From assembly GCA_038087875.1 (NCBI GenBank), contig JAXLNO010001745.1, positions 1 through 64,000 on the forward strand: 64,000 nt of DNA, in the 5' to 3' direction. Within the stretch, counting starts at the first letter, position 1. The number at the start of each line of letters is the position of its first letter. This stretch comes from Malacoraja senta. Its lineage: Eukaryota. The notes beneath the pieces are model-generated. The model was not told the origin of the DNA, made no database searches, and was given only the letters and a program-made list of their open reading frames with translations. Of this stretch, positions 7,649 to 47,300 are shown one piece after another. Position numbers and translations under genes: made by a program.

Positions 7649-7670
7649 TAGATAGATAGATAGATAGATG

Positions 7671-7726
<56 letters not shown>
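7645..7726. repeat. (GATA)n microsatellite
   Basis: About 20 GATA units abutting the Helitron 5' terminus. Confidence 0.97.
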
Positions 7727-10945: not shown

Positions 10946-13349
10946 CCAGAACAATACATTTTCATGCTGTGATTTGACATTTTTCACAAAAAAGGCCAGC
11001 AAAGCTCTTTATATAAAGTAAATTTATATAATAAAAGTAAAACTTTTACTTTTTACTAATAATTATGTCTTTTGATGATATGATCTGCATTGAAACATAA
11101 AAGGATGTTTCAATGTGAATTCTTTCTCCTTATCTGTATTGTAGCATAAACAAAGATGTTCAAAACAAAGCTAGATAAAATGCTGGAGAAACTCAACGGG
11201 TGAGGCAGCATCTATAGAGTGAAGGAAAACAAATGTGCTTTCTGATCCTTTTATGTTATTTATACTTATTTATATTTATCATGGAGGGTGTATAGTGGCA
11301 TAAGGCCTCAAATGCAGAAAATCAACAGAGCGCCCCATTCCACCCCTCTCTCATCTTCCATACCCCTTTTTGCCGTGCAGGCTACAGCTCATGGCATAAA
11401 ACTGTAGCATAGCGGATTAAAACAGGATGACTAATGGAGAAGGGAAGGGGGCCCAAAAGAAACTTTGTACCCACTGATAAAATTCCTCTGAGGCCCTGCG
11501 TATACACGCACAAACAGTGTGTGTTGTGAACCATGTCTTCCAAGACGCGCACGTATAGTGAAACATTTCTCAAGTTGGGCTTCACAAGCATTGTTCAAAA
11601 TCCGTGGTCAAGCCGCGATGTGTTCTCTGTGCCAAGGTTTAGAGTCACGAGAGCATGAAGCCCAGCAAACTGAAGATCCATTTGGAGTCTTGTCACAGTA
11701 ACCTGGCGAAAAAGAGCGTGGACTATTTCAAACGAAAAGAAGCCGTACTCAAGGGTTCCCGCATGTATTCAACGGGTCACTGCGCTCATCAAAATGAAGC
11801 AGCGTTGGAGGCTTCATACCAGATTGCTTATCGAATCGCACAGACTAAGAAACCTCACACCATCGGTGAAGAGCTTATCAAGCCACGCCTTCTCGAAACA
11901 GCGAAATTGGTGCTGGGGAAGAGCAGTCAAACAAGTTCAGGCAGATTTCCATTTTGAATTAAACAGTTAAAAGTTGAATCTCGGATATGAGTAATGATAT
12001 TCTGCTGCAAGTAGTGAGGGCTGTGACGAGCAGTCCAGTGTATTCACTGCAACTGGGCGAGTCAACAGATGTTGCCTCATGTTCCCAACTGCTAGTCTAC
12101 GTTCGTTACCTCAATGGAGGAGTACCTGTTCTCGGAGCCATTGGCTACTACCACTCGGGGAGAAGATGTGTTCAGAATGCTGGAAGCCTTCCTCATCAAA
12201 CATGAGCTTGGCTGGGAATGCCTTGTTGGGACATGTACAGTTGGGGCACCTTCCATGGTCGGTTGCAGAACCGGTTTCCAAGCCTTCGTGAAGGATGTCG
12301 CTCCCCATGTCTCCTTCACCCACTGCATGATACATCGCCATGCTTTAGCGATGAAGACTCTCCCTCTTGGTCTTCTAGAAGTGCTTTCAGATGTGGTGAA
12401 GATTGTGAACCACATCCGAGAGCGCAACAAACTGAAGAATCTTCAAGCGATGTGTGAAGAAATGGGCGCCGATTTCACTATTCTGTTATTCCACACAGAA
12501 GTGCGCTGGCTTTTGCGTGGTAAAGTTCTCAATCATGTGATTCGACTTCGAGTGGAAATAGCGCTGTTCTTGGAGAGAAGGGGTACTGAGAAGGAGAATC
12601 AGCTTCATGAAAAGATGCAGGATGAACTGTTCGGGATGAAGGTTGCTTACTTGGCTGACTTCTTCGCTGAGGTGAATTCCTTGAACCTGTAATTTCAAGG
12701 AAACATCCCAATGCTACACACAGCTTGTGGCAAAGTGGCAGCGTTCAGGAGGAACCTTTACCAGAGAAGAGTCGAGGATCATCCGACCCTTTCCCGTTGA
12801 AGACGGTGGCATCAGTGATACTGACGTGACTGCGAAGGTTGAATTTTACCGAATTCGTGAAGATGCGCAGCTCAAGAGTGACTTCATGGAACAAGAGCTC
12901 GCCACGTTTTGGCTGAAAGTGAAGGACTGTCCTGCTCTTTCGAAGAGGGCCCTGACCCTATTGGTCCATTCCCCCTCAACCTCTCACTGTGAGGGTGGAT
13001 TCTCAACTATGGTAACTCTGAAAACGAAGGTACGCAATAGGCTTGTGATCGACACTGACATGAGATGCTGCCTGTCGAGCATTCGTGCTCGTTTTGATTG
13101 CCTGATGACGGCGAAGCAATTTCAGCCATCCCATTGACTGAGCAATGGCAGACATGTTTTAATAAATCGGGCTGTTTTTCTTCAAATTTTGTTTCAGAGG
13201 TCACGGTACTGATCAAGAATGCCTGATGGGGTCGTGGGGCCAAAAAGGATAAGAACAACTGCTCTAATACTTAAAGGTAAAGGGGCAAATAAAGGCCACA
13301 AAGTGGCTTTAGTGAGTCGGATTACAGAAAATCCCACATCTTTCTCAAG

Positions 13350-15686: not shown

Positions 15687-15962
15687 ATTATCACTACGTT
15701 CAAGGACAGTTTGGTTGTGAGGTGGACGATCACAGTCCCACTGTAGGGATATTGAAGTTGGCCTTTGATGGAAGATATGCATTTAGTTTTGATAAGGACA
15801 AACTAAAGTGGACGGTGCATGATCCAATAGCTGAGCCCTTCAAAGAGAAATGGGACAAGAATGAAAAAATGAACCGTTATTTCAAGAGCTTGTTAGAACA
15901 TGACTGTGTGGATCTATGGCTTACATACTATGCAATTGGAAAGACATACCTGACCAGAAAAG
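15687..15962 (+). CDS. MHC class I-like alpha2 domain exon
   Basis: Acceptor tttttctttcag|AT and donor AAAG|gtgagt; 276 bp, the canonical class I exon 3 length. Translation (D)YHYVQGQFGCEV...AFDG...KWT...KEKW...LEHDCVDLWLTYYAIGKTYLTRK retains H93, Q96, C101, D119, G120, W133, K146, W147, C164 and Y171 (HLA-A2 numbering, manual alignment). Confidence 0.96.
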
Positions 15963-24900: not shown

Positions 24901-27900
24901 ATCAACTCCTGTTCGGTGCCAGTTCCTCATTGCACTCAATTCTCCAATCTTTCAAAAGTTTAACTACCGCCACATTAAATACTTCCAATGAGTTTGTCTT
25001 CACAAATCTCCAGAGTCAAGAGCGCCAGAGAATGACCACACTCTGCAAAAAGAGATTTTGTAAACAAATGACTGATCTCTTTTATCTCTTATTGAAGAGG
25101 AGTGAAAATACGGCCAATTTTAAGCTTGTCCCTCCCCAATTGACCCTCATTTCATAACTTGTCAATTATTTATTATTGTCAATAATGTGCCCTAGTGAAA
25201 AGATTTGCCGTTGGTATTAGTTTATTATTGTCACATGAACTGAGATATAGTCAAAAGTTTGTCTGTGTGTTATCCAATCAGATCATACTACACATGTGCA
25301 ATCAAGCCATCCACAAGTAGAACAGTACAAAGAGAAAACTACTCAGAGTGCAGAATACCGGGTTACAATATCATAGCATTACAGTTACAGAGAAAGTGCA
25401 GATCAAAAAGAGTTGCAAGGATCACAATGAGATTGGTTGGAAGTTCAGGGCAACATCTTATCTTACATGAGAATCATTCAGTAGTCCAATAACAGTGGGG
25501 AAGAAGCTGTTCCTGAATTTAATGGTACGTACTTTCAAACTTTCTTGTGTACTGTCTTAACAGGGAGCATACAATCCCTTTTAAACCACATGGTTGGTTG
25601 ATGGGACGAAAGAGGCAAAATGGGGCAGATGTGGACAGTAACTTGGTTGTTGTAGACTGAAGAATATTTTGTGGTGGGTGACTGTGCAAGTTTTACTGAA
25701 GATGAAAATAACCATCTTACTGTCTTGTAGTTTCCCCTGAGGTATCTCTCGCTGCCCGCCCTGATGATCATTCAGTCCTGTACTGCACTGTGTTTGGATT
25801 TTACCCACCGGCCATCAATGTCAGCTGGTTGCAGAATGGTCAACATGTCTCTGAGACCAAATCTTCTGGGGTCATACACAACAACGATGGAACATATCAT
25901 CTAAGGTCTGTCCTTGAGTATGATCCGTATGATGGGAAACAGTATTCCTGTCATGTCGATCACAGCAGCCTGCCCGGTGGGAAGATCATCATCTGGGGTA
26001 AGAACGTTAAATATTCTTTCATAGATAATCATTATCTTCTGTTGTATCCATTTTAATCATCGGGAATACATCCCATATTCCAAGATGCTTAAACTTTCTT
26101 TGTTTAGTGGTGTTGCTCTAAGTAATCACGTAATCAGCACCCACTCTCCACATGAGCAGAAGACTTTGTCAACAGAACATTGATCAAAAGTAAATAAATA
26201 ACTAATATACAAGGAAGGAGTATTTGGGATTCTCAGTGGTGGAACTGATATCCATGAAAGGTATGTTTAAATAAAAAATGAATCTTGATGTGATTAACAG
26301 CAAGGCACTGGGGGAGTACATGCCCCAATCCAAATCAATGGTCCGAAGTGGAAATGATTGAGAGCTTCATGTTCCTTGGCATGAATGTATCCAATATTCT
26401 GTCATGGACTGGCCACATAGCCAAGGGGACACACCAACACCTCTACTTCCTCAGGAGACTGAGAATATTCATCATGTCTCTGGTGACTCCAGCAAACATC
26501 TATAGATGCCGCTAGAGAAAGCATGTTGTTGGGTTGCATCACATCTTGATTTGGGAACTGCACTGCCCAAGACTGCAAGAATATACAAAGAGTTAAAGAT
26601 CATCACACAGCCCAGACTTCCCACTATTGGCTCAATCTACACTAGGTTGCCTTGGAAAACGAGACTTATCCCACCCCGGTCATTCCTCCTTCCTGCTCCC
26701 ATCAGGCAATAGGTACTGAAAGTTGAAAATATGCACTGCCAGACTCAGGAACACCCCCTTTCCACCTGTTAACAGGCTTCGGAAGGGTCCTTCCATAATG
26801 TAGGTTTAAATCCCGATTCACCTCAACCTCATTGCACATTGAACATTGTCTATGGAACTGATGTGTTACAATGTTGAGAACTATATTCTGTACTCTGTAT
26901 CCTCCTCTTTGCTCTATCTATTGTTTTTGAGTTTGTATTTATGTATAGTATTATAATTTGTTTGGATAGCATACAAAACAAACCTTTGCTCTGTATTTTG
27001 AAACATCTGGCATTAATAAAACAAAACCTAATGAAGTAAGTTCCCTGACGCAAGTTACAGATTCAGCAACAACAAATATAGCTGCCTGACAAATAGCGAT
27101 CGTACTAGTTTGATTCCAAGTATGCTGCACTATCCTACACAAATGTTCACTTTTGAAGATTCCCTCGAACAATGCACAACTAAGGAATCTGATGTTTCAC
27201 TCTGAAGACTGTTGACATACTCCAGAACTTAATTTCCAACCTATCTATGTATCATCAGCAATCTAGGCTACAGCGCCATCAGCCCTTTCTTCTGCTCTTA
27301 ATACCAACGATAAGTAGTTCACTTTCTTGCAATGATTCCCAACCTGCAGTTGCAGTTTCCCAACCTGAACACTCCTTTAAGACAACTCTCTGCTTGCTCT
27401 AAATTGTTTTTTCCATTCATGCTAATTATTACCCCCAATGTCATAAGCCTTTGCATCACTAGATTGATATCTTATGAAAATCCAGATATTGTGCGACATC
27501 TGGTGGTCAGGCCACTTATTGCTAGAACCCTCGTCAGGGGAGCTGGGACTATCACATGACAGGGTTTTGGTGGGAGTTGGTGATGAATCAGTCGCCAGTC
27601 AACTGGTGTGCCCGATAACAACGGCAGGAACTTTGCTCAAGTCCTTACTAAACGTGAGTGGGCCAAAACTGTATTTCTTTTAAAAAAAAACATTGATTTG
27701 TTCACGACGCTTGGATCTCTACAATATATTGTATTTCTTTTGTTTCTCATTTCAATTGTGTTACCTATTCTGCTTTTCCATCATTTTGTTTTTGAATTTT
27801 AGGCTTTTCACACCTGCTGCTCGAATATACATTGTCTACGGGTTCCTGTTGCATTTTCAAAGAATTCTAATCAATTTCTCAAACAAAGTTTGAAGAAGGG

Positions 27901-30900
27901 TCCCAAAACGAAACGTCACCTGTCCATGTGTAAGAAGAAACTGCAAATGCTGGTTTACACCGAAGATGGACACAAATTGCTGGAATAACTCAGCTGGTCA
28001 GCCAGCATCTCTGGAGAAAAGGAATAGGTGATGAATCCATATTCGCCAGAGATGCTGCCTGTTCCGCTGAGTTACTCCAGCATTTTGTGTCTATTATGTA
28101 TATTCTTTTCACTGACTGGTTAGCATGAAACAAAAGCTTTTCACTGTACCTCAATACATGTGACAATAAACTAAACTAAAGCTTTTGTGTAAATCAGTAT
28201 CTGCATCTCTTTCTTTCTACAATTTTCCTGTTAATGCACTTTATTGTTTTGTTATTACTTAAATGTTCTGCCATTACTGAAAGGAATCCAACATTTCCCC
28301 CAAAACAGATGTCAGATTATATAGGGTTAAAGCTTTCTGATTTCTATTCGCCTTCTTTCATGAATTAAGTTGTGGCTGTGATGGTGCCATAGATCATAGA
28401 GTTGTACAGAACAGATATTGTCCCTTTGCCATGTTGCAGAACTCCGTGATTCAAAACAACATATTTATATATGTTGAAAAGCGCCAAAGATAGACACAAA
28501 ATGCTGGAGTAACTCAGCGGTGAGGTAGCATCTCTTGAGAAAAGGAATAGGTTGCATTTCGGGTCGAGACCCTTCTTCACCCTGAAGTCTTCAGACAGTG
28601 CCAATCTATTTAGCTGCACTGCTTAGCAATTGATTTGTAAAATTATGCATTTTTATTTTTCAGAAGGAAATGGGAAGAAAGACAGGCACATATGCCTTAT
28701 TGCCGTGTGTGTGCTGATATTGTTGGCTGTTGCTTTGGCAGTAATTGTTTGGTGGAGAAAAAAGAGGAGAGGTAAGATGGAAACATTGTGATGAACTGTT
28801 GCTAGTAAAGGTATTGGGCTTGAAGAAATGATCGATCTCAAGTAGGATAAGGCATCAGCTACACCTGAAATGCCTCGACAGTCACCACTGTCAACTAGCC
28901 TTTGTGCTGTTGTTAAATGTTTCTGATAATCAGATATTTAAAAATTGTGAATTCAGTGTAAAAAAATGTTATACATTATGGATTCACTGCCCCAAATCCT
29001 AGAAATATCAATGAGTCATTAAAAAGTACAGCATGCATGCAGTCCTTTCGGCCCACCGTGTCCATGCCAACCACCAACCAACTGTTCTCATGAATTCTAT
29101 CTCATTGCACCTTCTCATCCAGTCACCCACCCACTAGGGGCAATTTACAGTGGCCAATTAAACAATAAACTGACACATCTTAGGATGTGTGAGGAAACCG
29201 GAGCCCCTGGAGGGATCCAATGCGGTTACACGGAGAACGTGCAAACTCCACATAGATGGCACTCAAGGTCAAAATTGAACCCGGGTCTGTGTCGCTGTAT
29301 GGCAGCAGCTCTACGAGTTGTGACACTGTGCTGCTCTGTTGGGGGCTCGCACTGTTCATGATCCAAGTCAGCTATGAGGCAGATTGGTTGCAGTTTAACG
29401 TTTTCTAGTTTTGTTTAGTTTAATTTAGAGATACAGTGACGAAACAGGTCCTTAGGCCCGCCGAGTCTGCGCTGACCAGCGATCCGCGCACATTAACACT
29501 ATCCTATACACATACACCAAGCCAATTAACCTACATACCTGTACGTCTTTGGAGTGTGGGAGGAAACCTTAGATCTCGGAGAAAACACACGCGGTCATGG
29601 GGAGAACGTACAAACTTTGTACAGACAGCATCAGTAGTCGGGATCGAACCCGGGTCTCCGGTGCTGCAAGCGCTGTAAGGCAGCAACTCTACCGCTGCAC
29701 ACAGTAGCTGCCACCAAGGCCGCTGTTGCTGGAAAACTCCAAATTAAGTGGGAATGTGAGTAGTGGGAGAAATGGTTCAAGGTGGAAAGCCGAATGAATG
29801 AGCAACAACATGACAGGTGGACTACAATGTGAAACAGGACAGCACAGAGCCAGAGACCTGAATTAAATACCGACATCATCTGTTGTATCTGTAGAGTTGG
29901 ATGTTGTTCCTGTGACCATGTGGGTTTCCCCAGGTGCTCTGGTTTCCACCCACATCCCCAAAACATTGTTTGGTAGGTTAGTTGTCCCCTAGATTGTGCA
30001 TGATACAATGCGGGGAGAGCTGATGAGAATGTGGGACAAATGTAGGATTAGTGTACATGAATGGTTGGTGCAGGTCAGTGGGACAAAGGCCATGTTTGTA
30101 TGCTGCATATTTCCATGACTCTTTATGATGTAGAAAGATGCTGACTATTTATGATTTATAAGATTGGGAAAGACTGTGAGGGACAGTGCTATAGTAACTC
30201 AGCAGGTCAGGCAACATCCCTGGAGACCATGGATAGGTGACAATCTGGTTCGAGACTCTTCAGGCAAATTACAATGTTTGTACATAATGCAGCATGGTAG
30301 TGCAGCTGGTAGAACTGCTGTCTCACAACGCCAGAGACCCAGGTTCAATCTGGACCTCGGGTACTGTCTACGTGGAGTTTGCACGTTCTCTTGTGACTAT
30401 GTGGGCTTCCTCAGGGAGCTCCGGTTTCCTCCCATATCCCAAAGATGAGCAGGTGTGCAGGTAATCATCCTCGGTAAGTCACCCTGATAGTGTAGGGGTG
30501 GATGGGAAATCTATTATGAATGGGTGATTGCTGGTTAGTATGGATTTGGTGGCACAAATGGCCTGTTTACACACTATCACTGTTTTCAAGAGAGAGTTAG
30601 ATTTAGCGCTTAGGGCTAAGGGAGTCGGGGGATATGGGGGAAAAGCCAGATCGGAGTATTAATTATGGATGATCAGCCATGATTGTATTGAATGGCGGTG
30701 CTGGCTCAAAGGGCCGAATAGCCTATTCCTGCACTTATTTTTTATGTTTCTATCTTTCTATTAAATAAACTAAATTGGAAGACAGAAGGTATTGACTGAT
30801 GCATCTTCACGCCAGCTGTAAATGTCATAAACTGTGAGAATTGATTGCAAATGTTATACAATATTATAAACTAAACTGCGTGATCAAAATGACAAGATGG

Positions 30901-33900
30901 ATGAAGAGCAGAGTTTTCATTGAAATAACAGAGGTGCAGCTTTCTCGAGCACTTGGCCTTGGTTGTGTAATATTTCCTCTTCAAAATACAATGTTCCCAG
31001 GTATTGCTGGTCTGAGACACCATTCAGCAAGTATATTTCCTGAAATTGAGATTCTGCTTTCATGGTATCAAGATGTCTAACAGCTCCAGCACCCAGATCA
31101 GAACCTTGCCAAAACTAAGAATGCAGCAACAATTTAGTCATTGAACATCAACGTCATGCATATTTGAACTGAGGCAATGGTTAGCTTATTATCACTGTAA
31201 ACCAGTCATGGTCATGGGTCTGCCATTGTGGTCACTATTAGTGAGGATGATTAACTATCATTTAGCAGCGAAACGAAAAAGAATTGGCTTTTCAAGCCCA
31301 CGGAGCCATAGAGTCATACGGCATGGAAATGGGCCCTTTGCTTCAACTTGGCCATGCCAACCAAGATGCCATGTTTAAACTACAATTTTCCTGCAATTGA
31401 CCCATATCTCACTGAACCTTTCCTATCTACAGTATGTACCTGTCCAAGTGTGTTCTAAATGTTTTTTAATACCTGCCTCAACTCCTTCCCCTGGAATGTT
31501 CTTCCATATTTCCACTTCCTCTGGTTCCGAGTAACTCGTTCCCTTCTCACCTTAAACCTAAGTCCTCTGGTTCTTGATTACATAAGGCTGGTTAAAAGAT
31601 TCTGTGCATTCAATCTATCTATGCTCCTTGATTTTATAAACTTCTATAAGATCACCCCTCAGCCTCTTGCGTGCCAAGGACTAAAGTCCAAGCATTCTTA
31701 TCCTCTCCCTGAATCACAGGCCCTGTTAATGACATCCTTCCGATAGTGGAGTGACCAAAACTTAACACAATACTCCAAATGTGGCCTCACCATCATCTTG
31801 TACAACTGTAGCAGAACATCCCAACTTTTGTATTCAGTACCTTTCTTTTAAAATCTTTTTATTGTTTTTTTTCCAAAAAACAAAAACAAAAATAAAACAT
31901 AAAAAACAGAGCAAAAAGATACAAAGGGATCAGGATTAAACACATTAATAACAGGTATAATCTAATATGAGACCAGTGTCAAAATACACAATGAATATAG
32001 ACCTCTATGTAAATATAGTTAAATCTTTAAAAGGAAACATAAATGTAAAAAAAAGCAAAGATAAAAAGACAAAAAGAAAAAGAAAAAACAAAACCCCATA
32101 AACTAAAAAAACGTTTTTAAAAATTGATAATAATAAAATAAGAATAAAAATAAAATAAATAAATAAAACAAAACAGAGCAAAACCGAATCTGAACTGAGA
32201 AATTCAACAATTTAAGTCTGTTTGTCGTCAAGTCCATTCCACCCTATGAAGGTAAAATAATTTTTATAAAGGTTAAAGAGGGAACAATTTATGTTGTATG
32301 AAAGTGTTCAATAAGTTTTCCCCAAGTCTTATCAAATTTAACCAAGGGTTCAACAATGTCACTTCTAATTTTTTCTCAATTTAAACATGATATTGTCTCA
32401 GAATACCACTGGAGTGTGGTCGGAGGGTTGGAATCTTTCCATTTAAAGAAAATAAATCTTCTGGCAATTAATGTGGTAAAAGCAATCAACCGATGGGCGG
32501 AGTGGGACAAATGAATAGAATCTAACATTGGTAACCCAAAAATTGCAGTAATAGGATGAGGTTGTAAATCGATACCTAAGACTACCGAAATAGTATCAAA
32601 AATGTCTTTCCAATATTTTTCCAAAAGAGGGCAGGACCAAAACATATGGGTCAGTGATGCCACTTCAGAGTTACATCTGTCACAGGTAGGATTTATATGA
32701 CCATAAAAACGAGCTAACTTATCTTTTGACATATGAGCTCTGTGGACCACCTTGAATTGTATCAAAGCGTGTCTTGCATACATTGAAGAGGTATTAACTA
32801 ATTGAAGGATCCTCTCCCATTTCTCTATAGATAAAGAAATTTGGAGTTCCCTTTCCCAGTCATCCTTAATTTTATCAAATGTATCTATTTGTAATTTTGA
32901 AATCAACTCATGAATAGTCGTTATTAACCCTTTCTGATAATGGTTCAACTGTAAAAAAAATCCAAAATTTCGGGTTGATGTGGTAGCGGAAAAAGGGGTA
33001 GTTCCTTTTGTCTAATTTGTAAATATCTAAAAAAGTGTGAATTAGGTAAGTTATATTTATTGGAGAGTTGTTCGAAAGACATAAAACAACCTTCCAAAAA
33101 CAAATCACGAAAAGCTACTAATCCCTTCCTCTTCCATAACAAAAAAACTTGATCAGTACTAGATGGTTGGAAGAGAAATTTGGATAAAATCAGATAGTCC
33201 AAAAAACTTACGAAATTGAAACCGTATTCGGAACGTATGTCTTATTATTGGGTTCGTCATATATTTATTCAATCTCGTAATTGTAAAAGGTAACGAGGTC
33301 CCTAGAATAGAAGCCAATTATAGCCCTTGTAAGGAATCACGTTCTAGGTTTATCCATCCAGGGCATTGGGTATCTTCTAAATCTTTTGTCCAAAATGTTA
33401 AATAACGAACATTGACTGCCCAATAGTAGAGTCTAAGGTTCGGCAATGCCAAACCACCATCTTTTGGGGATTTCTGTAGGTATTTTTTACCTAGTCTGGG
33501 ATTTTTATTCTGCCACATATATGAAGAAATTTTAGAGTCTATAATATCAAAGAAAGATTTGGCAATAAAAATTGGTATCGTCTGAAATAAATGCAGACAT
33601 TTAGGTAAAATGAACATTTTAATAGCATTGATTCGGCCAATTAAGGATAAGGACATTGGTAACCATTTAGTGAACTGATGTTTAATATGGTCAATTAAAG
33701 GAATAAAATTAGCTTTAAATAAATCCTTGTGTTTCTTGGTGATCTTAATACCTAAATAAGTAAAACTTTCAGTAGTCAATCTAAATGGAAACTGTCCATA
33801 ACTCGAAACAAAATTATTTAATGGGAAAGCTCACCCTTACTAAGATTTAGTTTATAACCAGAAAAACTACTGAATTGATTAAGTAATGCTACTATTGCCG

Positions 33901-36900
33901 GAATAGATTTCTCAGGGTTAGAAATAAATAATAACAGATCATCTGCATAAAGAGATAGCTTATGTGTCTTAATCCCGCGGACAATACCAAAAATATTAGG
34001 GGATTCCCTAATAGCAGTGGCTAAAGTTTCCAAAGCAATATCAAATAGTAAAGGACTTAAGGGACAGCCCTGTCTAGTACCTTGAAAGAGCCTGAAAAAA
34101 AGGGGATCTCTGATTATTAGTAAATACAGAAGCCTGAGGTATAAGATATAGCAGTTTGATCCAAGAGATAAATTTTGGACCAATCTTAACTTTTTCAAGT
34201 ATATTGAATAAGTTTTCCATTCTACTCAATCAATAGCCTTCTCGGCATCAAGTGAGATGACACATTCTGGGGTTTTATTAGACGCTGTATATACAATATT
34301 TATTAATCTCCTAACATTAAAGAATGAGTAACGATTTTTAATAAAACCTGTCTGATCTTCAGAGATAATTTGCGGTAAAATCTTTTCCAATCTCATAGGT
34401 AATATTTTTGAAAGAATTTTAAAATCTACATTTAACATTGATATAGGTCTATATGATGTCACTTCAGTAGCGTCTTTATCTTTTTTTTTAATTAAAGAAA
34501 TAGAAGCTTCATAAAAAGATTGTGGTAATCTATTGCTTAAAAAGGCTTCTTTAAATACCTTGCATAGCCATGGAGACAATACATTTGAGAAATACTTTTA
34601 AAATTCTACTGTAAATCCATCTAAACCGGGAGCTTTACCAGATTTCATTGAAAAAATTGCTTTCTGTATTTCTTCTTCCGTGATGGGTTCATCTAACAAC
34701 AGATGGTAAATTGTATGGTAAATTTGGTAAGTTCAGTTTCTGTAAAAACTCATGCATTATATTGGGATCAGTAGGAAAATCTGATTGGTATAGGGAGGTA
34801 TAAAATTGCTGAAAGGATTTATTAATTTCGTGATGGTCTACAGTTACTGTACCATCCCGTTTACTCACTTTAGTAATCTGACGCTTGGCCGACACTGCTT
34901 TCAATTGATTAGCAAGTAATTTACCAGATTTTTCACCATTTATATAAAATTTACTTTTGGTTTTAAGTAACTGGTTCTCAATCGGTGATACTAATAACAA
35001 ATCATATCTCAATTGAAGTTCAACTCTATTCTTATAGAGCTCTAAACTAGGAGATTTTGAATATTTTTTATCAATTTCTTTAATCTCGTCAGCCAATGTG
35101 CGTATTTCTTTTTGTGTTTGTTTTTTTAATCCCGCGGAGTATGAAATAATTTGTCCACGAATATATGCCTTAAAAGCATCCCAAACAATATCATTGGATA
35201 TCTCTTCATTAGAGTTTGTCAAGAAGTAAAAAGCAATCTGATCTTTCATAAACTTAATAAAGTTTAAGTCTTGAAGCAAAGTAGCATTAAATCGCCATTG
35301 TTTAGCACTAAACTTGGAATCAGGTAGTTTGATCAATAGTTTCACTGGTGCATGATCAGAAATAGCAATTGTATCATACTCACATGCAATGACCGATGGA
35401 AATAGCCGAGAATCTAGTATAAAATAGTCGATCCTAGAATAACTATGAAATACATGAGAGAAAAATGAAAATTCTTTGTCATTTGCGTGTAAGAATCTCC
35501 AAATTTCTTACATTCCCGAGTCAAGTAAAAAATAATTAATAAAATTAGCTGATTTATTTGGAAGCGCATGATCAGATGTAGACCTATCAATCGAGGGATT
35601 CAAACAGCAATTGAAGTCTCCATCCATTATTAAAAAGTGTTCATTTAAATTAGGAAAGGATGCAATTAACTGTTTAAAAAACTCAGGGTGATCAATATTT
35701 GGTGCATAGACATTCACCAAAGCCACTTTTTGCCTAAAAAGGACAGCGGTAATCACCAAGAATCTGCCATATGGATCAGAAATTGTTTCATGGTGAACAA
35801 ACGGAATTGAGGAGTCAATAAAAATAGAGACTACCTTTCACCTTAGCCTGTGAATTTGAATGAAACTGCTGTCCTCTCCAAAACTTGAAAAATCGTGACT
35901 TGTCATCTTGCCTTACATGAGTTTCCTGAACAAAGATAATCTGAGCATTTAGTCTGTGAAGAACTTTTTTTTAAAAAGTCCTCTTAATGGGATGGTTCAA
36001 GCCATTCACACTCCATGAAAGGAAATGAGTAACTTTATCCATATTGCTTGTAAAAATCATGTGGGATGTAATGGGTTAATTTCTTGAAGCCTAAAAGTTC
36101 ATAATACTGGAAGAAGAAAAATCTAGGGCGGAGTCAGAAGTGACGACATTTCAGCCAATTTTGTAGTTCAGAATTTGCACAAATGGAGATCACTAAATAG
36201 GGAACAAAAGACCCCTCCCCCTTCCCCCCTCCCACCCCTGTAGAACCCCAAACTGACCAAAAGAGTCAGCAAACTACCTAATCCCCTCCCCAATCCCATC
36301 TCTCCCAGTAACAGCGCTCAGCATAAAAAGAATAATATTTAACCACTACTTCATAACACATTCGTTATTATCTCTTTGAGAGAGAAGAAGAAAAAAATAC
36401 AGACTGGCATGGAATGCTGCTTATTATTATCCAAGGTCAAGATATGAAAAACAAGAACTGCATTCTCTTAGTTTGTCTAACGACAGGGGAACACGAATTA
36501 ACAAAGAAATTCTTAAAAGAATATATATAAAAGAAAAACAACTCGTCCAGTTAAATTCTTAATCATTACCAAACAAAATGTTGTCAAAATAGGAACAGTA
36601 AATCTCCAATTATAACTTAATCAGCTATCTATTACTCCCCTTCCTCGTCGTAGCTCTTCAGAAAGCTGGAGGCGTCTTGAGGACTGTTAAAAAATTGAAC
36701 GTTACCATTGAAAAGCCGAATACGCAATATAGCTGGTGATAATAGAGCTGGGCGCATTTTCTTATACAAATCAGACATTACATTATAAAAAGTCTTTCTT
36801 ATTTCCAAAAGCTCATAACTATAATCAGGGACAAACCGAAACTCTCATCCTTCATATTCAACCACACCAAACTTTTTTGCTGCCTGGAGAATATTCTCCT

Positions 36901-39110
36901 TCATTTGAAAAAAATGAAACCGAATGCTCAAGTGTCTCGGTTTATTACCGGATCTCTTCCCAATCCTGTGTGCCTTATCCAGGAACGGAAGGTTTTCATT
37001 GTGCTCAATGTTGAATGTTTCCTTTTTCATTTTAGAAGCATATTTTATAACGTTATCTCCTTCTTGGGCTTCGGGCAAACCAACAATTCGTCAATTCAAA
37101 CCACGGCTTCTGTTTTCTAAGTCCATATTTTTAGACTTGTATTGCTGAAGTGTTTTCATTCATTCTCCGTTCCAATTTTTCAATCTTCAAATCTCTCTCC
37201 TGTCCCAGGGTGCGCAAGATATCAATTTGATCCGTTTGTTCACGAAGTTCATCTTGTAACAAAGACAGTTTTCCTTGGACTTCCTTCAATTTGGTCGAAA
37301 CTCCTTTCACCATTTCTTCCAAACTGCCAAATCTTGTTTTCATTTCATTTTTCAGCTCGTTGTTCAATTCATCATTCATTTTTCGATATTGCTTCTATGA
37401 TGCTGGAATCAGAAGCTGCAGCTGTGGTGGTGGCTTTCCCCAGTTCCTTCTTTGGGGATCCTCCTTTCCTTCTTGTCTCCATCCTTTTCACGATTAAGGC
37501 GTGTAAAAGTGTTATCAACACTTTATGAACAGTTAGACGGTGTCTTGAAGTCAAATAGTCACCAGTAACATTGAAAGGGTAGTGAGGGGAGCAGAGAGGA
37601 TCATTGGCGTCTCCCTACCCTGGGTACAAGAACTGTTCCAGAGCCGCTGTCTGAAAAAAGCTCAGAGAATTGCTAAGGACAAACTGCACCCCCTCCACAT
37701 ACACCTGGATCTCCTGCCATCAGGCAAGAGATATCGCAGCATCAAAGCACGGACCACAAGACTGCTAAACAGCTTCCTGCCATATGCTGTGAGGCTGCTA
37801 AACAGCCACTCTGTACTCACAGTCACCTGATTCAGCGGCTTGGCACGGACACTTTAATAACTGGCACTGGCCACTTCAATAACTGGCACTGGCCACTCAA
37901 ATCAGCTGCCCCGGACATCTTTATGATTGGTTTTACTGTATTTTAACGTTGTTGTTTTACCTACTTTTTCACTATTTATACTGTTCCATCAGGGACTGGA
38001 TTGTTTTTAGTGTTATTACGTGTGAAATGTTTTAAATTTCATGTGCGATGCTCCGGTATTCCCTGGGAAACGTCTTTTCATTTTGCACTGTACAACTGTT
38101 GCTTCCAAGATGACAATAAAGGTTGATTGAATGATTGATTGAATGAAAGAGTGGTCAGTGGAAGTTAAAAGTTAAGGGAGCAAACGAGTTTGCAACCTTA
38201 CAGCATGCTGCCACAAGGAGAGTCTAGTTATTGACATGTTATTGATGTTCATGATTATTCTGTTCTTTGTGCCTGGCCATTTTGACTTTGTCACATTTTA
38301 CTTGGTTTATGATATTGTACAAGATTTGCAATCACACCTCCCAATTGACTAAAATTATCCCAATTAACTAATTGCCTACTATGGCATTTAAATTATTGCA
38401 TTATATTCAGTGCAGCGTAGAAGCTGCAGTTTTTTAAAAAGGGCAAGTTTTTATTACATACTATGTGGTGTGTGCCTGGAAAGCACTGCCAGGGATGGTG
38501 GCGTCTGGCGTGCACCTTCGTGGGTGCATGGAGATGCAGGGGTTTGAGGGACATGAATCATTTGCAGGCAGATGCTGCCTAACTGGTGTCTGTCCGACTG
38601 ATCTGGAGGGATCTGATGGTCAGGCAGGGAATATTTCCAGTGACCCAATGGTGCTGAGTTCGCTGAATTTTACGGTGAATGGGAATGCCCCTGTAATAGA
38701 GGAACAGGTCCTTTGTCCAACAACGTTTGTGCTGAACATGAGTCCGCACCAACCAACGATCACCCACATAAGCTAGGGACACAAGTCAATTAACCTACAA
38801 ACCTGCACATCTGTCTTTGGAATGTGGGAGGAAACTGGAGCACCTGGAGAAAACCTATGCAGTCACAGGGAGAAGGTACAAATTCCATACAGACATCACC
38901 CGTGGTCAGGATCAAACCCAGGTGTCTGGCGCTGTGCCTTTATATCTGGAAGGAAGATGTTATGTGGGATGAATCAACAGTTAAAGCGAATAAACTAGTT
39001 GCATCTTTCTGAGTTCTGTTCTCTGCTATGCCATTTCTTTGTTGTCTAATATTTAATTTCCCTCCTCAGATTATCAAAATATTCAACCAAAGCAGAACGT
39101 GCACTGCTAA
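15687..39110 (+). CDS. Non-classical MHC class I-like heavy chain gene (5'-partial; alpha2, alpha3, TM and cytoplasmic exons)
   Basis: Four exons with AG/GT boundaries, all phase 1, join into one open frame: alpha2 276 bp, alpha3 267 bp, TM 108 bp, tail 41 bp to TAA. Domain order and exon phasing are those of MHC class I. The lineage cannot be assigned without a phylogeny. Confidence 0.9.
16470..19233 (-). mobile_element. CR1 LINE (young; 5'-truncated, internally deleted)
   Basis: Endonuclease (YFNARSI, ISETWL, VGDFN), RT (QHGF, VPQGSVLGP, YADD) and a (TATGGTTA)n tail. A deletion of about 386 bp relative to the 41-44 kb copy falls near 18519. Confidence 0.95.
19320..21560 (-). mobile_element. 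L1-clade LINE ORF2 3' fragment, interrupted
   Basis: ORFs 21045-21545 (FFRYLQLRDYI, LIQFKVLHKL) and 19652-19939 (ILTFWK, IWSPCIDFL) with an A-rich 3' end; split by the 19940-20895 insertion. Confidence 0.85.
19940..20895 (+). mobile_element. Non-autonomous GC-rich retro-element inserted into L1
   Basis: Interrupts the L1 frame and ends in AATAAA plus a (TTA)n tail; no recognisable ORF. Confidence 0.6.
21560..22190. mobile_element. Older CR1 3' fragments in both orientations
   Basis: EQFWTPYLRKDVLALERVQRR (minus strand) and a plus-strand KLRRAKFTRDV-like CR1 end. Confidence 0.7.
22195..22490 (-). mobile_element. tRNA-derived SINE
   Basis: Same SINE core with a (TAAAC)n tail. Confidence 0.8.
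24175..24470 (-). mobile_element. tRNA-derived SINE (decayed)
   Basis: Same SINE core. Confidence 0.72.
25731..25997 (+). CDS. MHC class I-like alpha3 (C1-set Ig) exon
   Basis: Acceptor tgtcttgtag|TT and donor TGGG|gtaaga. Translation (V)SPEVSLAARPDDHSVLYCTVFGFYPPAINVSWLQNG...DGTYHL...YSCHVDHSSLPGGKIIIW carries the C1-set motifs CxxxGFYP, W and YxCxVxH. Confidence 0.96.
28664..28771 (+). CDS. MHC class I-like connecting peptide/transmembrane exon
   Basis: Acceptor ttttatttttcag|AA and donor AGAG|gtaaga; phase 1-1. Encodes (E)GNGKKDRHICLIAVCVLILLAVALAVIVWWRKKRR: a hydrophobic helix followed by a basic stop-transfer run. Confidence 0.92.
29030..30570. mobile_element. Cluster of four tRNA-derived SINEs
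   Basis: Copies at about 29030-29330 (-), 29410-29712 (-, best conserved), 29860-30120 (+) and 30290-30570 (+). Confidence 0.8.
31845..37560 (-). mobile_element. Near-full-length decayed L1-clade LINE
   Basis: ORF1 remnants at about 37554-36640 (coiled coil; LDKAHRIG..KPRHLSIRF). ORF2 from the ATG at 36042 has endonuclease (LSWSVNGL, GDFNC), RT (GTRQGCPLSPLLF, LYADD) and a Cys-rich C-terminus (CDRC..HMFWSC). A-rich 3' UTR; many stops and frameshifts. Confidence 0.93.
37562..38145 (+). mobile_element. Rex1/Babar LINE 3' fragment
   Basis: AERIIGVSLP..KAQRIAKDKLHP..LLPSGKRYRSIKARTTRLLNSF, ending in GACAATAAA plus a (TTGA)n tail. Confidence 0.85.
39070..39110 (+). CDS. Probable terminal cytoplasmic-tail exon (DYQNIQPKQNVHC*)
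   Basis: Strong acceptor ctaatatttaatttccctcctcag| with a branch-like ctaat. Phase 1 matches the TM donor and gives a YxxPhi motif. It lies 10.3 kb from the TM exon (5.7 kb of that is L1), and there is no transcript evidence. Confidence 0.62.
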
Positions 39111-40085
39111 CCAATCGCTGAGTAGAAGATTTCATGGATGTGATTAAAATGCAGGAACTGAAATAATTGGAAAGGGTTAAATTAAGTTTATCAAACATGA
39201 CAGAAATTCTCAATAGACTGCCCTGCATTTGTACAAATTAGAGCTATCTAGCAATTTATGTTGATAACAACTGATATGACTGAGGCCTCAACTCCTTTAC
39301 TGTGCTTATTCCACATAAGACACAATTCCCTGTTCTTTTAGAATATATCCACGCATTATCCATCAATTCACCAGCACATCATGCCTCTTTAATACATTCA
39401 TAAGGTTAACTCTGTTTCTTGTCATCTCCAAGGGACACAGAACCAGTGATTTCAGCCATTCATGGTTAGGCAACACTTGCTTATTCCAGAAATCTCTTCT
39501 AGCTGATATCCAATATTAATATATCCTTTCTTAAATTTGAGGACCAAGCTGTGCACAGTAGTCCTGATATGTCCTTAGCAACATCATGTACCATAATTAC
39601 AATAGTAACCTACTTTGAATGCTAATCACATTCTGCGTTGTGTGCTGCATCTACCTGCTGGCTTTTTGTTTGCACTTTAAGCACTTGAATCTCTTGTACT
39701 CCACTCATTTGCAATCTCACTCCATTTAGATAATAGCTTCTTTTAATTGATCTTACCAGAGTGTGTGAGCACATATTTTCCATTCTTAAACTCCATTTGC
39801 CATGTTTATGTTCATCTAACAAAGAGTCATGGAGCCATATAGCATGGAAGTAGGTACTTCAGCCTAATGCTCCAAGCTGAACAAGATGCTACATTTAGGT
39901 TAGTCACATTTGCCAGCGTTCGGCCCACTTTCCTCTCAACATGTTCTATCCATGTACCTGTCCAAGTGTCTTTTCAATGTTGTTATTCTACCTTCGCTGG
40001 CAGCTCATTCCATACACCCAGTAACCTCTTAGTAGAAAAGGTTGCCTCTCGGGTTCCTACTAAATCTTCCTCCTCACCTTAAACC

Positions 40086-40719
40086 CAGGGGTGCAGTGCT
40101 GCCGGAGCTCACCTGAGCACCGATCCGGCACCTCTGTTAAAGAAAAAATAAACAGCGTGGAATTTTAACTAGCGGATGTGTGGTCGGGGTAACCTGATTA
40201 AAAGAGGGGTAAGGGGAAGACCCATCACTACTGAGGTTCGCTGTAGGAGGAGGGGAACACTATGATGCAGCAGAGACAGACCATGTGATGTGTGCATAGT
40301 TTGTGGTTGTGGGCCTGGAGCTGAGCCTGGAACTCTGGTGGGTGGGTGAGTGGGTGGGTGTGTGTGTAGGTGAATGGGTGTGAGGGTGAGAGTGTGTGTG
40401 TGAAGGCCCAGAGCTGCAGGATAGCCAGGGCGAGTCGGTGTCTTGCCGGCACCTCTGTAAAAATACATGATAACCGTATTTTTCTTTACTTGCTTCATAA
40501 TTATATTTCATGATAATCAGTGAGTGCAACCATGCAATATTTTGTCATAATTAAATTAAGTATTATATGTTTTAATGTACTAGCTATACACTGGGATGTA
40601 GTAATAGGCTATAATCTTGTTTGACCCTCTAGGGAGACTAGCTTGCCTCCCCCCCTAGCAAAATCTGAAATGCCCCTGTTTGACAGCTCCGACACCTAAA
40701 CAATTAGCATTGAACACTG
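40086..40719. mobile_element. Non-autonomous hAT element
   Basis: Perfect 8-bp TSD CTTAAACC (40078-40085 and 40720-40727) and imperfect CAG..CTG termini; splits a CR1 3' fragment. Confidence 0.8.
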
Positions 40720-41059
40720 CTTAAACCTGTTTTTGCTGGTTCTTGATTACCCTACCCTGGGTAAAATAAATCCTGATCAATCGCCCTCATGATTTTAGAA
40801 AGCTCTCTAAGCACCAATTAAATGGTTTCAATTATAGATAGAGTAAGACTTTGTGGTTATTTCCAACAAGAATTTTAGACTAAAGAAAGGCCAGTGGAAG
40901 TACTTGGTCAAACAGCATCTGTGGAGGCAAATGACATATACCAACATTTCAAGTCAAGGCACTGCATTAGAATTGAAGGAGAGGATGGGAAGATTCTAAC
41001 AGTTTGAAGGAGGAATGGGGCAGAGGCTGGTAAGTGGCAGGTGGAATCAACTGGGGAGG

Positions 41060-44000
41060 GGATGAATCTCAGGATTACTGCCTGTGCCACGTGACGGTGA
41101 GAGTAGGAATGGAGTGAGGTGGAGGATAAATGCGTGGCTGAGGAACTGGTGCAGCGGGCAGGGATTCAAATTTCTGGATCATTGGGATTTCTTTTGGGGA
41201 AGGAGTGACCTGTACAGAAAGGACGGGTTGCACTTGAACCCGAGGGGCACCAATATCCTGGCGGGGAGATTTGCAAAGGCTACTGGGGAGACTTTAAACT
41301 AGAACGGTTGGGGGGAGGGACTCAAATAGAGAAAGCTAGTGGAAAATGTGGGAGGCAGGAGGCAGAGAAGGGAAGCACTCGGACCCAAAATGTAGGGGAG
41401 AAAGAAGAAAAAGATAATAAACAGAGAATAAGTGGTGGTGGGTTTCTTAAATGTGTATATTTTAATGCAAGGAGCATTGTAAGAAAGGTGGATGAGCTTA
41501 GAGCCTGGATTGACACCTGGAAGTATGGTGTTGTGGCGATCAGTGAAACATGGTTGCAGGAGGGCTGTGATTGGCAAATAAATATTCCAGGATTTCGTTG
41601 CTTCAGGGGTGATAGAATTGGAGGGGCAAGAGGTGGGGTGTTGCATTGCTTGTCAAGGAAGATATTACAGCAGTGCTTTGGCAGGATAGATTAGAGGGCT
41701 CGTCTAGGGAGGCTATTTGGGTGGAACTGAGAAATGGGAAAGGTGTAGCAACACTTATAGGGGTGTATTATAGACCGCCAAATGGGGAGCGAGAATTGGA
41801 AGAGCAAATATATAAGGAGATAGCAGATATTAGTAGTAAGCACAAGGTAGTGATTGTGGGAGATTTCAATTTTCCACACATAGACTGGGAAACACATTCT
41901 GTAAAAGGGCTGGATGGTTTGGAGTTTGTAAAATGTGTGCAAGATAGTTTTTTGCAGCAATACATAGAGGTACCTACTAGAGAAGGGGCAGTGCTGGACC
42001 TCCTGTTAGGAAATGAGACAGGGCAAGTGGCGGAGGTATGCGTCGGGGAGCACTTCGGGTCCAGTGATCACAATACCATTAGTTTCAATATAATTATGGA
42101 GAGGGTCAGAACTGGACCTAGGGTTGAGATTTTTGTTTGGAGAAAGGCTAACTTTGAGGAGATGCGAAAGGATTTAAAAGGAGTGAATTGGGACATGTTG
42201 TTTTATGGGAAGGATGTAGAAGAAAAATGGAGGACATTTAAGGGTGAAATTTTAAGAGTACAGAATCTTTATGTCCCTGTTCGGTTGAAAGGAAATAGTA
42301 AAAAATGGAAAGAGCCATGGTTTTCAAGGGAAATTGGACACTTGGTTCGGAAAAAGAGAGAGATCTACAATAATTATAGGCAGCATGGAGTAAATGAGGT
42401 GCTTGAGGAGTATAAATAATGTAAAAAGAATATTAAGAAAGAAATTAGAAAAGCTAAAAGAAGATATGAGGTTGCTTTGGCAAGTAAGGTGAAAGTAAAT
42501 CCAAAGGGTTTCTACAGCTATATTAATAGCAAAAGGATAACAAGGAATAAAATCGGTCCATTAGAGAGTCAGAGTGGACAGCTATCTGCAGAGCCAAAAG
42601 AGATGGGGGAGATATTGAACAATTTCTTTTCTTCGGTATTCACGAAGGAGAAGGATATGGAATTATGTGAGGTAAGGGAAACGAGCAGAGTAGCAATGGA
42701 AACTGTGAGATTCAAAGAAGAGGAGGTGCGGACACTTTTGAAAAATATGAAAACGGATAAGTCTCCAGGTCCCGACAGAATATTTCCTAGGACATTGAGG
42801 GAAGTTAGTGTAGAAATAGCAGGGGCTATGACAGAAATATTTCAAATGTCATTAGAAACGGGAATAGTGCCGGAGGATTGGCGTACTGCGCATGTTGTTC
42901 CGTTGTTTAAAAAGGGTTCGAAGAGTAAACCTAGCAATTATAGACCTGTTAGTTTGACGTCAGTGGTGGGCAAATTAATGGAAAGGATACTTAAAGATAA
43001 TATATATAAGCATCTGGATAAGCAGGGTCTGATTAGGAACAGTCAACATGGATTTGTGCCTGGAAGGTCATGCTTGACTAATCTTGAATTTTTCGAAGAG
43101 GTTACTAGGGAAATTGATGAGGGTAAAGCAGTGGATGTTGTCTATATGGACTTCAGTAAGGCCTTTGACAAGGTTCCTCATGGAAGGTTGGTTAAGAAGA
43201 TTCAATTGTTGGGTATTAATGGTGGAGTAGCAAGATGGATTCAACAGTGGCTAAATGGGAGATGCCAGAGAGTAATGGTGGATGGCTGTTTGTCAGGTTG
43301 GAGGCCGGTGACTAGTGGGGTGCCTCAGGGGGTCTGTGTTGGGTCCACTGTTGTTTGTCATGTACATCAATGATCTGGATGAAGGTGTGGAAAATTGGAT
43401 TAGTAAGTATGCAGATGATACTAAGATAGGTGGTGTTGTGGATAATGAAGTAGATTTTCAAAGTCTACAGAGAGATTTAGGCCATTTGGAAGAGTGGGCT
43501 GAAAGATGGCAGATGGAGTTTAATGCTGACAAATGTGAGGTGCTGCATCTCGGCAGGACAAATCAAAATAGGACGTACACGGTAAATGGTAGCGAATTGA
43601 GGAATGCAGTTGAACAGAGGGATCTAGGAATAACTGTGCATAGTTCCCTGAAGGTGGAATCTCATGTAGATAGGGTGGTAAAGAAAGCTTTTGGTGTGCT
43701 GGCCCTTATAAATCAGAGCATTGAATATAGAAGTTGGGATGTAATGTTAAAATTGTACAAGGCATTGGTGAGGCCAATTCTGGAGTATGGAGTACAGTTT
43801 TGGTCGCCTAATTATAGGAAGGATGTCAACAAAATAGAGAGAGTACAGAGGAGATTTACTAGAATGTTGCCTGGGTTTCAGCAACTAAGTTACAGAGAAA
43901 GGTTGAACAAGTTAGGTCTTTATTCTTTGGAGCGCAGAAGGTTAAGAGGGGACTTGATAGAGGTCTTTAAAATTATGAGCGGGTTAGACAGAGTGGACGT

Positions 44001-44360
44001 GGATAAGCTTTTCCCATTGAGAGTAGGGAAGATTCAAACAAGGGGACATGACTTGAGAATTAAGGGACAGAAGTTTAGGGGGAACATTAGGGGGAACTTC
44101 TTTACTCAGAGAGTGGTAGCTGTGTGGAATGAGCTTCCAGTGGAAGTGGTGGAGGCAGGTTCGATGTTATCCTTTAAAAATAGATTGGATGGGTATATGG
44201 ACGGGAAAGGAATGGAGGGTTATGGTCTGAGTGCAGGTAGATGGGACTAGGGGGAAGTATTTTATTTTTAATTTTAAAAAAAAATTAAAAAAAATTTAAA
44301 TGTTCGGCACGGACTTGAAGGGCCGAGATGGCCTGTTTCCGTGCTGTTATGGTTATATGA
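41060..44360 (+). mobile_element. CR1 LINE with ORF1 esterase end and nearly complete ORF2
   Basis: ORF1 SGNH-esterase end (DHWDFFWGRSDLYRKDGLHLNPRG), then ORF2 endonuclease and RT broken by a frameshift near 41635, a TAA at 42417-42419 and a frameshift near 43330; TTATGGTTATATG tail. Confidence 0.96.
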
Positions 44361-47300
44361 TGGGCAGATGGAGCAAAGTTGGTGTATGGGTGGTTGTGGG
44401 AGAACAAATGAACACCAGTGGTATGGATAAGCTGAAATGTGAAAACTTTATATTCATACCATCGGCTTGTAAGTTACCCAGGTGGATTATCAGATATTTT
44501 ACTTAAAACTTTCTGTGCCCAAGGTTAACGACAGATGGGTCAGTGTGTGAGTGGGAAGGGGTATTAAAATACCATACAACAGATCTCAGGATGATCTTTA
44601 CTTCAAAGGGATGTGCTGTACAAAATGGTTGACATCTAAGCTAGTTTCTCCACAGTGTGAGCAATGAATGCAGTATAGAAAGTTGAAAGAGGTGCAAGTG
44701 AACCTCTGTCTCATTTGAACAGATTATTCTCCTGTTGTTCACCTCTTCCTCCTCCTCTCCTACCTGTTTCCATCTACCCATTATCCTCTCCCCACCTGGT
44801 TCTACGTTTGATCTACCAGCGTCTGTCCTATTCCTCCCTGATTGCTATATATTGGCAATCCATCCTCTTCCCTCGCAGGCCTGGTGCAGGTTCTTGACCC
44901 TATTTGTGACATCAACCATTTGTCCCAATAATTTTGCTTGAGCCATTGAATGCTTTCAGTCTTCTGTTTTTAGTTGCAGATTCCATTAGCTACAGTCATT
45001 ATTGGATAGAATATATGTTGTTTTAACACTGCATTTAGTCTGAGACACAGCACCAATAAATGTTGTTACATAACGCTTGGTTATTTGATGATGTCAAAAG
45101 TCTTGATTGTTTGTACTTTGTACATTTCTAATCTAATGCAAAGAATTTATCATCCATAAGAATATTAAATTATCCACGGTGACTGGTGGTACAGAGATCA
45201 AGTTCATTTTATGTGGCTCATTTGGTACAAGTTCTGCTCTTGAGATTTAACCTAATAATAGTTGCCTGTAGAATGTGCTTGATGAATAGACCATTGAGTA
45301 TAAGATTTTTGGAAATAGATTGGCATGAAATCCAAGTAAACACATTGGATTGCACCCTGTTTTATAGTGGCTTCATGTTGCGAAGTAAAGGCAAGATATA
45401 TGGAATATGCAAGATATAATATGAAAGATATAATATGCAAGGCGCAAAATTAAATTGTTGTTAAGAAAATGTAAGGCCTCCATTTATTTGCAACAGCATC
45501 AATCACAGTTATCTTACGTCAAAGTTGATTTTGTATTTTTTAAAGAATGAATGGGAACAAAATGATCAAAAATGTATTGGCAGTCAAAGTAATACAAGGT
45601 TGTAGAGGAGACAAGTGTGTAGGAACAGGCCACTCTGCCGATCCTGCCAATACTGGCGAATATAGTCCACATGAGCCTCTTCCCACCTTATGCGATCTGC
45701 AACATGGTTGGCAAGTCTGTGCTGGATTCTCCAATGTAGAACCGAGTGTTCTTTTCTCTTTTGTGTTTGCCCAGCCTTCCCCTAAATGCAATTCATTGAT
45801 CTGGATCCTCATTCTCACCTGTATTGGGTGGGAGGGGAGGAGAGGGAGCATTCTCTGTAGAATTCCCTGCTGGATTTTATGGTGGAAATGTTTTCACCAT
45901 AGTGATTCATTTAAAAGCTTTATGTATTTTAATATCACCCTTCAGCCACTTCTCAAAGGGGTGGAGGGCAGGGTGTGAACGACTTACCCAGGGACATTCG
46001 ATGACCGTGTTTTGTTTATTTTATCCAAACATTTTTTAATATAAATTAATATAGTATTATTTTTTTGTATCTTGGGTAAGCACATTGAAATAGCAATGGA
46101 TGGCGTGTTCAGAAAATTATTTCTGATTTGTCCTCGCTTTGTGAACACCAAACCAATGTATGCATCTGTCTTATCTGCAAAAAGGCATTGGCACCAGGGT
46201 CTAGGTTCCTTTTAAGCATCCCAGTTATCATGTTCTTCGATGCAGAGGAAATGTGGCCACGATAAATACAAAAATGTTGAAATGCAGAATATAAAAGTAA
46301 TAGGAATTCAGGCATTTGAGCCTCAACTATTATTCCATGTGATCAATTGTGACCTAAAATGTATACCTTGATCCTTTTATTTCTCTGATCCTTTGACCAT
46401 ACAAATAACATATAACTCCTTGTATAAATTCAATGATCTGTGTTCAACTGCTTCCAGTGGTGTAACATTCCACACGTTCATCATTCTGTGCGAGAAGTAA
46501 TCGCTCTTCATCTCAACTTGAAGCCTTATCATCAGATTGTGTCCACTGGGTCCTGAACTGACCGGATTTCCCTCTTGAATATATGTATACGTACATATAT
46601 ACACATATATGTGTGTGTGTGTACCTGTGAGTATGTGTATATATATATATATGTGCACACTGATTTTGTTTTTCTCTTTCTCGTTTTTCATATTGTTTAC
46701 CATGTACTATGTTTACATATTCCATTGTGCTGCAGTGAGTAAGAATTTCATTGTACTATCTGGGACATATGACAATAAAACACTCTTGACTCTCTTGAAT
46801 CTGTACAGACCCATAAGAATGTTGTAGTTGATTTTGAATGGTCCTAATCACAATGTAAAACTAATCGCCCAAATCGCCCTTCATACATTCGTCCTCCCAT
46901 CCCTGAAATCTGATGAATCTTCACAGCACTCCCTCCATAACAAGAACATTCTTCCTAAGATCAGGAGACTAAAACTGCAGATGCCCTGGTATTGGCAAGC
47001 ACATTTCTCAGAATAACATGATAATAATAATAATAATAGATTTTATTTATATAGCGCTTTTCAGGACACAAAGTCGCTTTAGAAAGGGATAAGGAGGAAT
47101 CCCTAGTCAGAGGGTGGTGAATCACATATTAAGTTCTTGGAGCTCTGGAAAATTATCAATCTTTGATGGGAAGAATGGATAGGGAGGCTGATCACTTTGC
47201 TGGAGGGTTTGAGAGCGGACAAGGAATTCTATGCAACGTGCGTTTGGAATGTCAAGTGTATGGCATGTAGATGTTGTGTAATTGGCTCCATTATGCCCTT

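Follow-up and report, generated by a model that had tools for sequence, protein, structure and literature searches.

To our knowledge, CD1 proper occurs only in mammals, birds and reptiles. CD1 genes are laid out with one transmembrane (TM) exon followed by one short tail exon, as is the gene described here. Lysosomal-type YxxPhi signals are said to be spaced 6–9 residues from the membrane and in many cases to be C-terminal, and the LAMP-1-type lysosomal signal is reportedly GYQTI at the C-terminus, both of which are ascribed to Bonifacino and Traub in 2003. Among the human proteins, a motif of this type stands just before the C-terminus of CD1B (YQNI), CD1C (YQDI) and CD1D (YQGV), which bears out the YxxPhi-containing CD1b tail that was cited in the initial annotation of this locus (PMC5002281). 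The tails of these proteins direct them to endosomes and lysosomes, with AP-3 being needed by CD1b and mouse CD1d for lysosomal delivery; a primer listed in the same paper encodes the C-terminus of CD1b as RRSYQNIP (PMC2194227).

Sharks and rays possess a non-classical MHC class I lineage, UGA, that is considered in one review to bind lipids like CD1, from a personal communication, and to be single- or low-copy (PMC12562908). UFA is mentioned in a 2023 paper in terms that match those used for UGA (PMC10751288). A structure has been deposited as PDB entry 9CH4 under the title "Crystal structure of shark nonclassical MHC CLASS I, UGA" (released 2026-03-18). This title was obtained by structural comparison, and an AlphaFold model of a skate homologue, of mediocre accuracy (pLDDT = 67), served only for that comparison. 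A search of the literature for a primary description of UGA, UFA or 9CH4 found none, and the review cites a personal communication only (PMC12562908).

The window, a 64,000-nucleotide stretch of DNA from Malacoraja senta, carries on its plus strand an MHC class I-like gene represented by four exons that are in phase. All are of phase 1 and have AG/GT boundaries (Table 1). When joined, the four exons are free of stop codons through both disulfide pairs and a 23-residue hydrophobic span. From searches against Pfam, the α2 exon matched MHC_I (E = 2.9e-13) and the α3 exon matched C1-set (E = 5.5e-20). The 3′ end of the TM exon reads ...TGG TGG AGA AAA AAG AGG AGA G/gtaag with the donor at 28771, and the last exon starts at 39070 directly after the acceptor tttaatttccctcctcag. 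Following the phase-1 join, the coding part of the last exon reads D (G + AT), YQNI, QPKQNVHC and stop, giving a predicted C-terminus of ...VIVWWRKKRR-DYQNIQPKQNVHC. The cytoplasmic tail comprises 18 residues, RKKRRDYQNIQPKQNVHC, and YQNI is found seven residues past the membrane span.

The join of 28771 to 39070 and the resulting tail peptide had been proposed in the initial annotation, where the acceptor was described as strong. A crude scoring of acceptors over the 28.8–47 kb interval placed the site at 39070 only 16th of 1203 AGs; thus, it is identified by homology and would not stand out from its sequence alone. Two Logan contigs, L001 (3455 nt, run SRR11241640) and L002 (1992 nt, run SRR13269358), are spliced mRNAs since each contains an uninterrupted reading frame of 334 codons. 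On alignment to the window, each contig breaks into four blocks with edges that coincide with those of the exons, the TM block extending to 28771 and the next block starting from 39068–39070. Across the junction, L001 reads ...AGGAGAG/ATTATCAAAATATT. In the last exon, the codons AAG (Lys, 39090–39092) and CAC (His, 39102–39104) are particular to the window copy. The nucleotide identity to these contigs is 94–95% for the α2 exon, about 94% for the α3 exon, about 92% for the TM exon and 80–88% for the 3′ untranslated region (blastn against the window). L001 and L002 represent a gene copy that is 90–95% identical and has the same TM-to-last-exon join.

When L001 and L002 were placed on a genomic locus of the thorny skate Amblyraja radiata (L003), six exons were identified over 78 kb, corresponding to the leader, α1, α2, α3, TM and tail. 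The intervening introns are, in order, 31.8, 11.3, 20.4, 6.3 and 6.8 kb in length. The window and the A. radiata locus share the 35 nt preceding the acceptor without a single difference, while the intron further upstream has diverged. RefSeq models from related species have the same ending as the predicted protein of the window. The proposed coordinates and tail peptide proved to be exact. The join itself is made in both contigs, and its acceptor region is kept in A. radiata. From these comparisons, it is confirmed that 39070–39110 is the true last coding exon of the gene. Located 10 kb from the TM exon, it is easily missed by automated gene models.

Table 1. Positions of the class I-like gene and associated elements in the window.
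Feature	Position	Strand	Description
α2 exon	15687–15962	+	276 nt, phase 1; both groove cysteines; canonical AG/GT sites
α3 exon	25731–25997	+	267 nt, phase 1; Ig C1-set domain; canonical splice sites
Connecting-peptide/TM exon	28664–28771	+	Ends with the basic stop-transfer run RKKRR and the first base of an Asp codon
Intron, 10.3 kb	28772–39069	+	Last 35 nt (39035–39069) are the polypyrimidine/acceptor region
LINE inside the 10.3-kb intron	about 32.4–35.8 kb	minus	Long stop-free retroelement-like stretches, assigned by eye
Last exon, coding part	39070–39110	+	(D)YQNIQPKQNVHC and stop; YQNI codons at 39072–39083, stop codon TAA at 39108–39110
3′ UTR homologous to L001	39111–45168	+	Blocks 39111–40085, 40720–41065 and 44405–45168

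The gene may be assigned to the UGA lineage since its α2 exon matches the PDB chain 9ch4_A (E = 6.8e-35) far above all other class I chains, the next having an E-value of 4.7e-12. A full-length skate homologue matched the same chain with an E-value of 2.8e-115. Among protein sequences, the α2 exon is 93% identical to a skate protein and 55–70% identical to a family of RefSeq models from sharks and rays. The window gene and the shark UGA protein of 9CH4 are about 60% identical, and sister elasmobranch class I lineages are only about 40% identical. Judged by sequence, the window gene is a skate copy of UGA, an elasmobranch non-classical MHC class I molecule.

Like UGA as represented by 9CH4, the window gene has the α2/α3/TM architecture of class I, and its short YxxPhi tail is common to the UGA-type RefSeq models of sharks and rays. 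The two differ in that the skate and ray tail is nine residues longer and terminated by Cys, whereas the shark tail stops straight after the motif. In addition, the window shows no leader or α1 exon for this copy. The review portrays UGA as single- or low-copy (PMC12562908), but many copies are present in skates. A single 90%-identity cluster includes 10 distinct RefSeq proteins from Rhinoraja longicauda, all from one 41.5-Mb chromosome, with more from Leucoraja and Amblyraja. This distribution points to an expansion of UGA copy number in skates, and the window copy adds to that picture.

It is possible, if somewhat doubtful, that the exon and its motif are real by descent while the window copy is an unexpressed or truncated duplicate, in which case the tail would be idle here and reflect other UGA copies. 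Searches with tblastn and relaxed blastn identified no leader or α1 exon in the 15.7 kb of the window upstream of α2, which would suit a dead duplicate. However, the α1–α2 intron of A. radiata measures 11.3 kb within a gene of 78 kb and α1 may lie outside the window; a truncation or simply the limit of the window could account for the absence. Compared with L001, the 3′ UTR is interrupted by an insertion of ~630 bp (40086–40719) and a same-strand LINE fragment of ~3.3 kb (41066–44404), the latter called by eye from long stop-free retroelement-like stretches. The multiplicity of skate copies, including those in the Rhinoraja cluster, also favors this alternative, as does the protein collection, where the best match to the window copy is 91% and no protein of that copy itself is present. 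Against these points, no stop interrupts any of the four visible exons, and their splice sites and cysteines are intact. A comparison of the window copy with the expressed mRNAs gave a dN/dS of about 0.4 overall, which also speaks against a dead duplicate (α2, 0.22–0.25; α3, about 0.5; TM and tail alone, 0.6–0.7 on very few sites).

Public sequencing runs contained only 40–60% of the 31-mers from the α3 exon and from the region surrounding the last exon (38700–39700). One of these, an RNA-type run, contained 40% of the α3 31-mers with an estimated identity of about 97%, and may be weighed against the absence of expression. The partial shares are read as close alleles or paralogues, the RNA-type run included, and do not amount to proof that the window copy is expressed. 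No transcript of exactly this copy came to light, and its expression may be presumed from that of its homologues.

With the exon established, the tail motif may be considered in terms of its conservation, which the initial annotation had named as a check on its reading. YxxPhi is a short, degenerate motif. Since it is expected in roughly 1 in 10 random 13-residue peptides (an estimate), a single occurrence means little and it is the conservation that matters. The motif is kept across elasmobranch UGA: in 14 further genera, drawn from skates, rays and sharks, it lies 6–8 residues past the membrane span. The Tyr is residue 7 of the tail in the window and residue 6–8 in all homologues. In skates, the tail after the membrane span follows the pattern RK[KN]R[RK]DYQ[NT]I..., and the corresponding tails contain ...AYENI... 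in sawfish, ...DYESI... in stingray and ...DYENI... in manta. In sharks, the stop comes directly after the motif, which is observed as AYNAV, GYNVI, DYNTV, DYNVV, EYNAV, DYNIV, DYSFV or DYSVV. The Tyr and the Ile/Val are fixed while the two x positions drift (Q/E/N/S followed by N/T/S/A/V/I/F), a pattern that selection on YxxPhi is expected to leave.

The motif was present at tail position 6–8 in 17 of the 21 UGA-lineage models that were first examined. Of the four exceptions, two are alternative isoforms, each with a sister isoform that carries the motif (Heptranchias DYNIV, Chiloscyllium DYSFV); the remaining two come from Pristis, where the models end at the TM exon or continue beyond it. 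The sole real exception is the whale shark (Rhincodon typus, P0211), where UGA ends in GYSLT and the hydrophobic residue at +3 has been lost. The other whale shark isoform ends in GRQVFL. YxxPhi was absent from all 12 tails examined outside UGA, which came from elasmobranch class I genes of its sister lineage and of classical type. The tails of skate, sawfish, stingray and manta continue for a further nine residues after the motif and have an invariant final Cys (...QPNQNVPC, ...RANQNLRC, ...RAHRRVNC).

The tail is best read as a putative tyrosine-based endosomal/lysosomal sorting signal. YQNI fits the YxxPhi consensus and is preceded by the 23-residue hydrophobic span and the RKKRR run, while the spacing of the Tyr from the membrane fits the 6–9-residue range of lysosomal-type signals. 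A sorting role is proposed because of the analogy with CD1 and the general rules for tyrosine signals. Under this proposal, YQNI would bind clathrin adaptor complexes through their mu subunits (those of AP-2 and possibly of AP-3), and UGA would then be internalized from the cell surface to cycle through endosomes or lysosomes. Ligand loading may take place in these compartments as it does for CD1b, CD1c and CD1d. Both the adaptor binding and the compartment are predicted by analogy, and AP-3 or lysosomal specificity is not readable from the sequence. A search for adaptor-binding or localization data on any UGA molecule returned none from the searchable literature. Overall, it is likely that the last exon of this skate UGA copy, spliced over a 10.3-kb intron, carries a YxxPhi sorting signal.

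A conserved Tyr might instead serve a role other than endocytic sorting, for example in phosphotyrosine signaling or basolateral targeting. Only the Tyr and the aliphatic residue at +3 are kept, other short linear motifs overlap YxxPhi, and batoids have conserved the nine-residue, Cys-ended extension, all of which would be compatible with such a role. It is nonetheless very unlikely given the 6–8-residue spacing from the membrane, the C-terminal position of the motif in sharks, the exact fit to the YxxPhi consensus and a tail that is too short for signaling modules. Furthermore, with lipid binding reported for UGA, endosomal sampling is the economical interpretation (PMC12562908). Chance, whereby YQNI would be spelled by a random open frame behind an AG that merely looks good, is scarcely credible: while the acceptor has a modest crude rank and YxxPhi is expected by chance in about a tenth of such peptides, this reading is already refuted by homologous mRNAs that use the exact junction, by conservation of the acceptor and exon in A. 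radiata and by the presence of such a tail in 14 other genera.

As a putative sorting signal, the tail may be compared to those of CD1 and LAMP-1. The window gene has the feature that characterizes CD1b, CD1c and CD1d, namely a very short tail with a basic run followed by YxxPhi near the C-terminus, and lipid binding is reported for both CD1 and UGA (PMC12562908). Unlike CD1, the skate motif has nine further residues after it. The resemblance to CD1b noted in the initial annotation holds insofar as the membrane-proximal YxxPhi is real and conserved; however, the literal YQNI is found only in some skates, and other taxa present YQTI, YENI, YESI, YNAV, YNVI, YNTV, YSVV and others. Thus, it is the YxxPhi class that is conserved and not a CD1b-specific signal. 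The tail is similar to that of LAMP-1 in having YxxPhi 6–9 residues from the membrane, in the DYQTI of Rhinoraja copies and in the shark tails that end at the motif. In contrast, LAMP-1 is an unrelated protein, and Asp, Ala, Glu or Gly precedes the Tyr in UGA in place of a fixed Gly.

By sequence, the window gene is not a CD1. Membership in that family was considered and rejected since the CD1-type Pfam model MHC_I_3 scored 16.6 bits, below its cut-off of 35, and CD1 was absent from the best 60 PDB sequence matches, where UGA led, MR1, classical class I, ZAG and HFE were the runners-up and a single ULBP chain was also present. The MHC_I model scored 50.2 bits, above its cut-off of 28.3. Shared ancestry with CD1, one of two origins suggested in the initial annotation for the likeness of the tails, finds no support in the sequence. 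It is unlikely that the one-exon YxxPhi tails of UGA and CD1 are homologous and descend from a lipid-presenting, endosome-sampling class I ancestor that predated the split of cartilaginous and bony lineages. If this were true, CD1-type trafficking would be as old as the MHC and would have been lost in teleosts and amphibians, not invented twice.

In sharks and rays, the candidate for a CD1 counterpart is UGA. If its tail carries a conserved endosomal sorting signal, this would provide the trafficking half of an argument for ancient endosomal lipid presentation. The UGA lineage is already known and on record as CD1-like, and the present interpretation is reasonable as a functional one; the likeness to the CD1 tail may stem from homology or from convergence. 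The window itself contributes one more copy of a lineage that has already been solved structurally and serves mainly as an annotation aid.

Some gene models from other species bear on the annotation of UGA loci. The UniRef model P0003 from Pristiophorus japonicus ends in ...RRRGEITMLFNQIRRG, which resembles the last exon of the window in a shifted frame. The peptide suggests that the splice donor of this model may have been mis-set. At the UGA locus of L. erinacea, RefSeq isoforms X1–X4 (P0152, P0165–P0169) continue beyond the TM exon into a GPR139-like receptor gene that lies downstream and look like read-through or fused gene models. Neither homologues of these alternative isoform exons nor GPR139-like receptor sequence was found in the window.

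Upstream of the gene, positions 1–7700 of the window consist of repeated multi-kb units in which one and the same 70-residue stretch without stops recurs at 545, 3276 and 7436. These repeats adjoin proline/serine-rich low-complexity tracts, forming a tandem or segmental repeat block. Between this block and the α2 exon, the plus strand at 11640–13140 has long stop-free stretches with the look, by eye, of a hAT-type transposase remnant.
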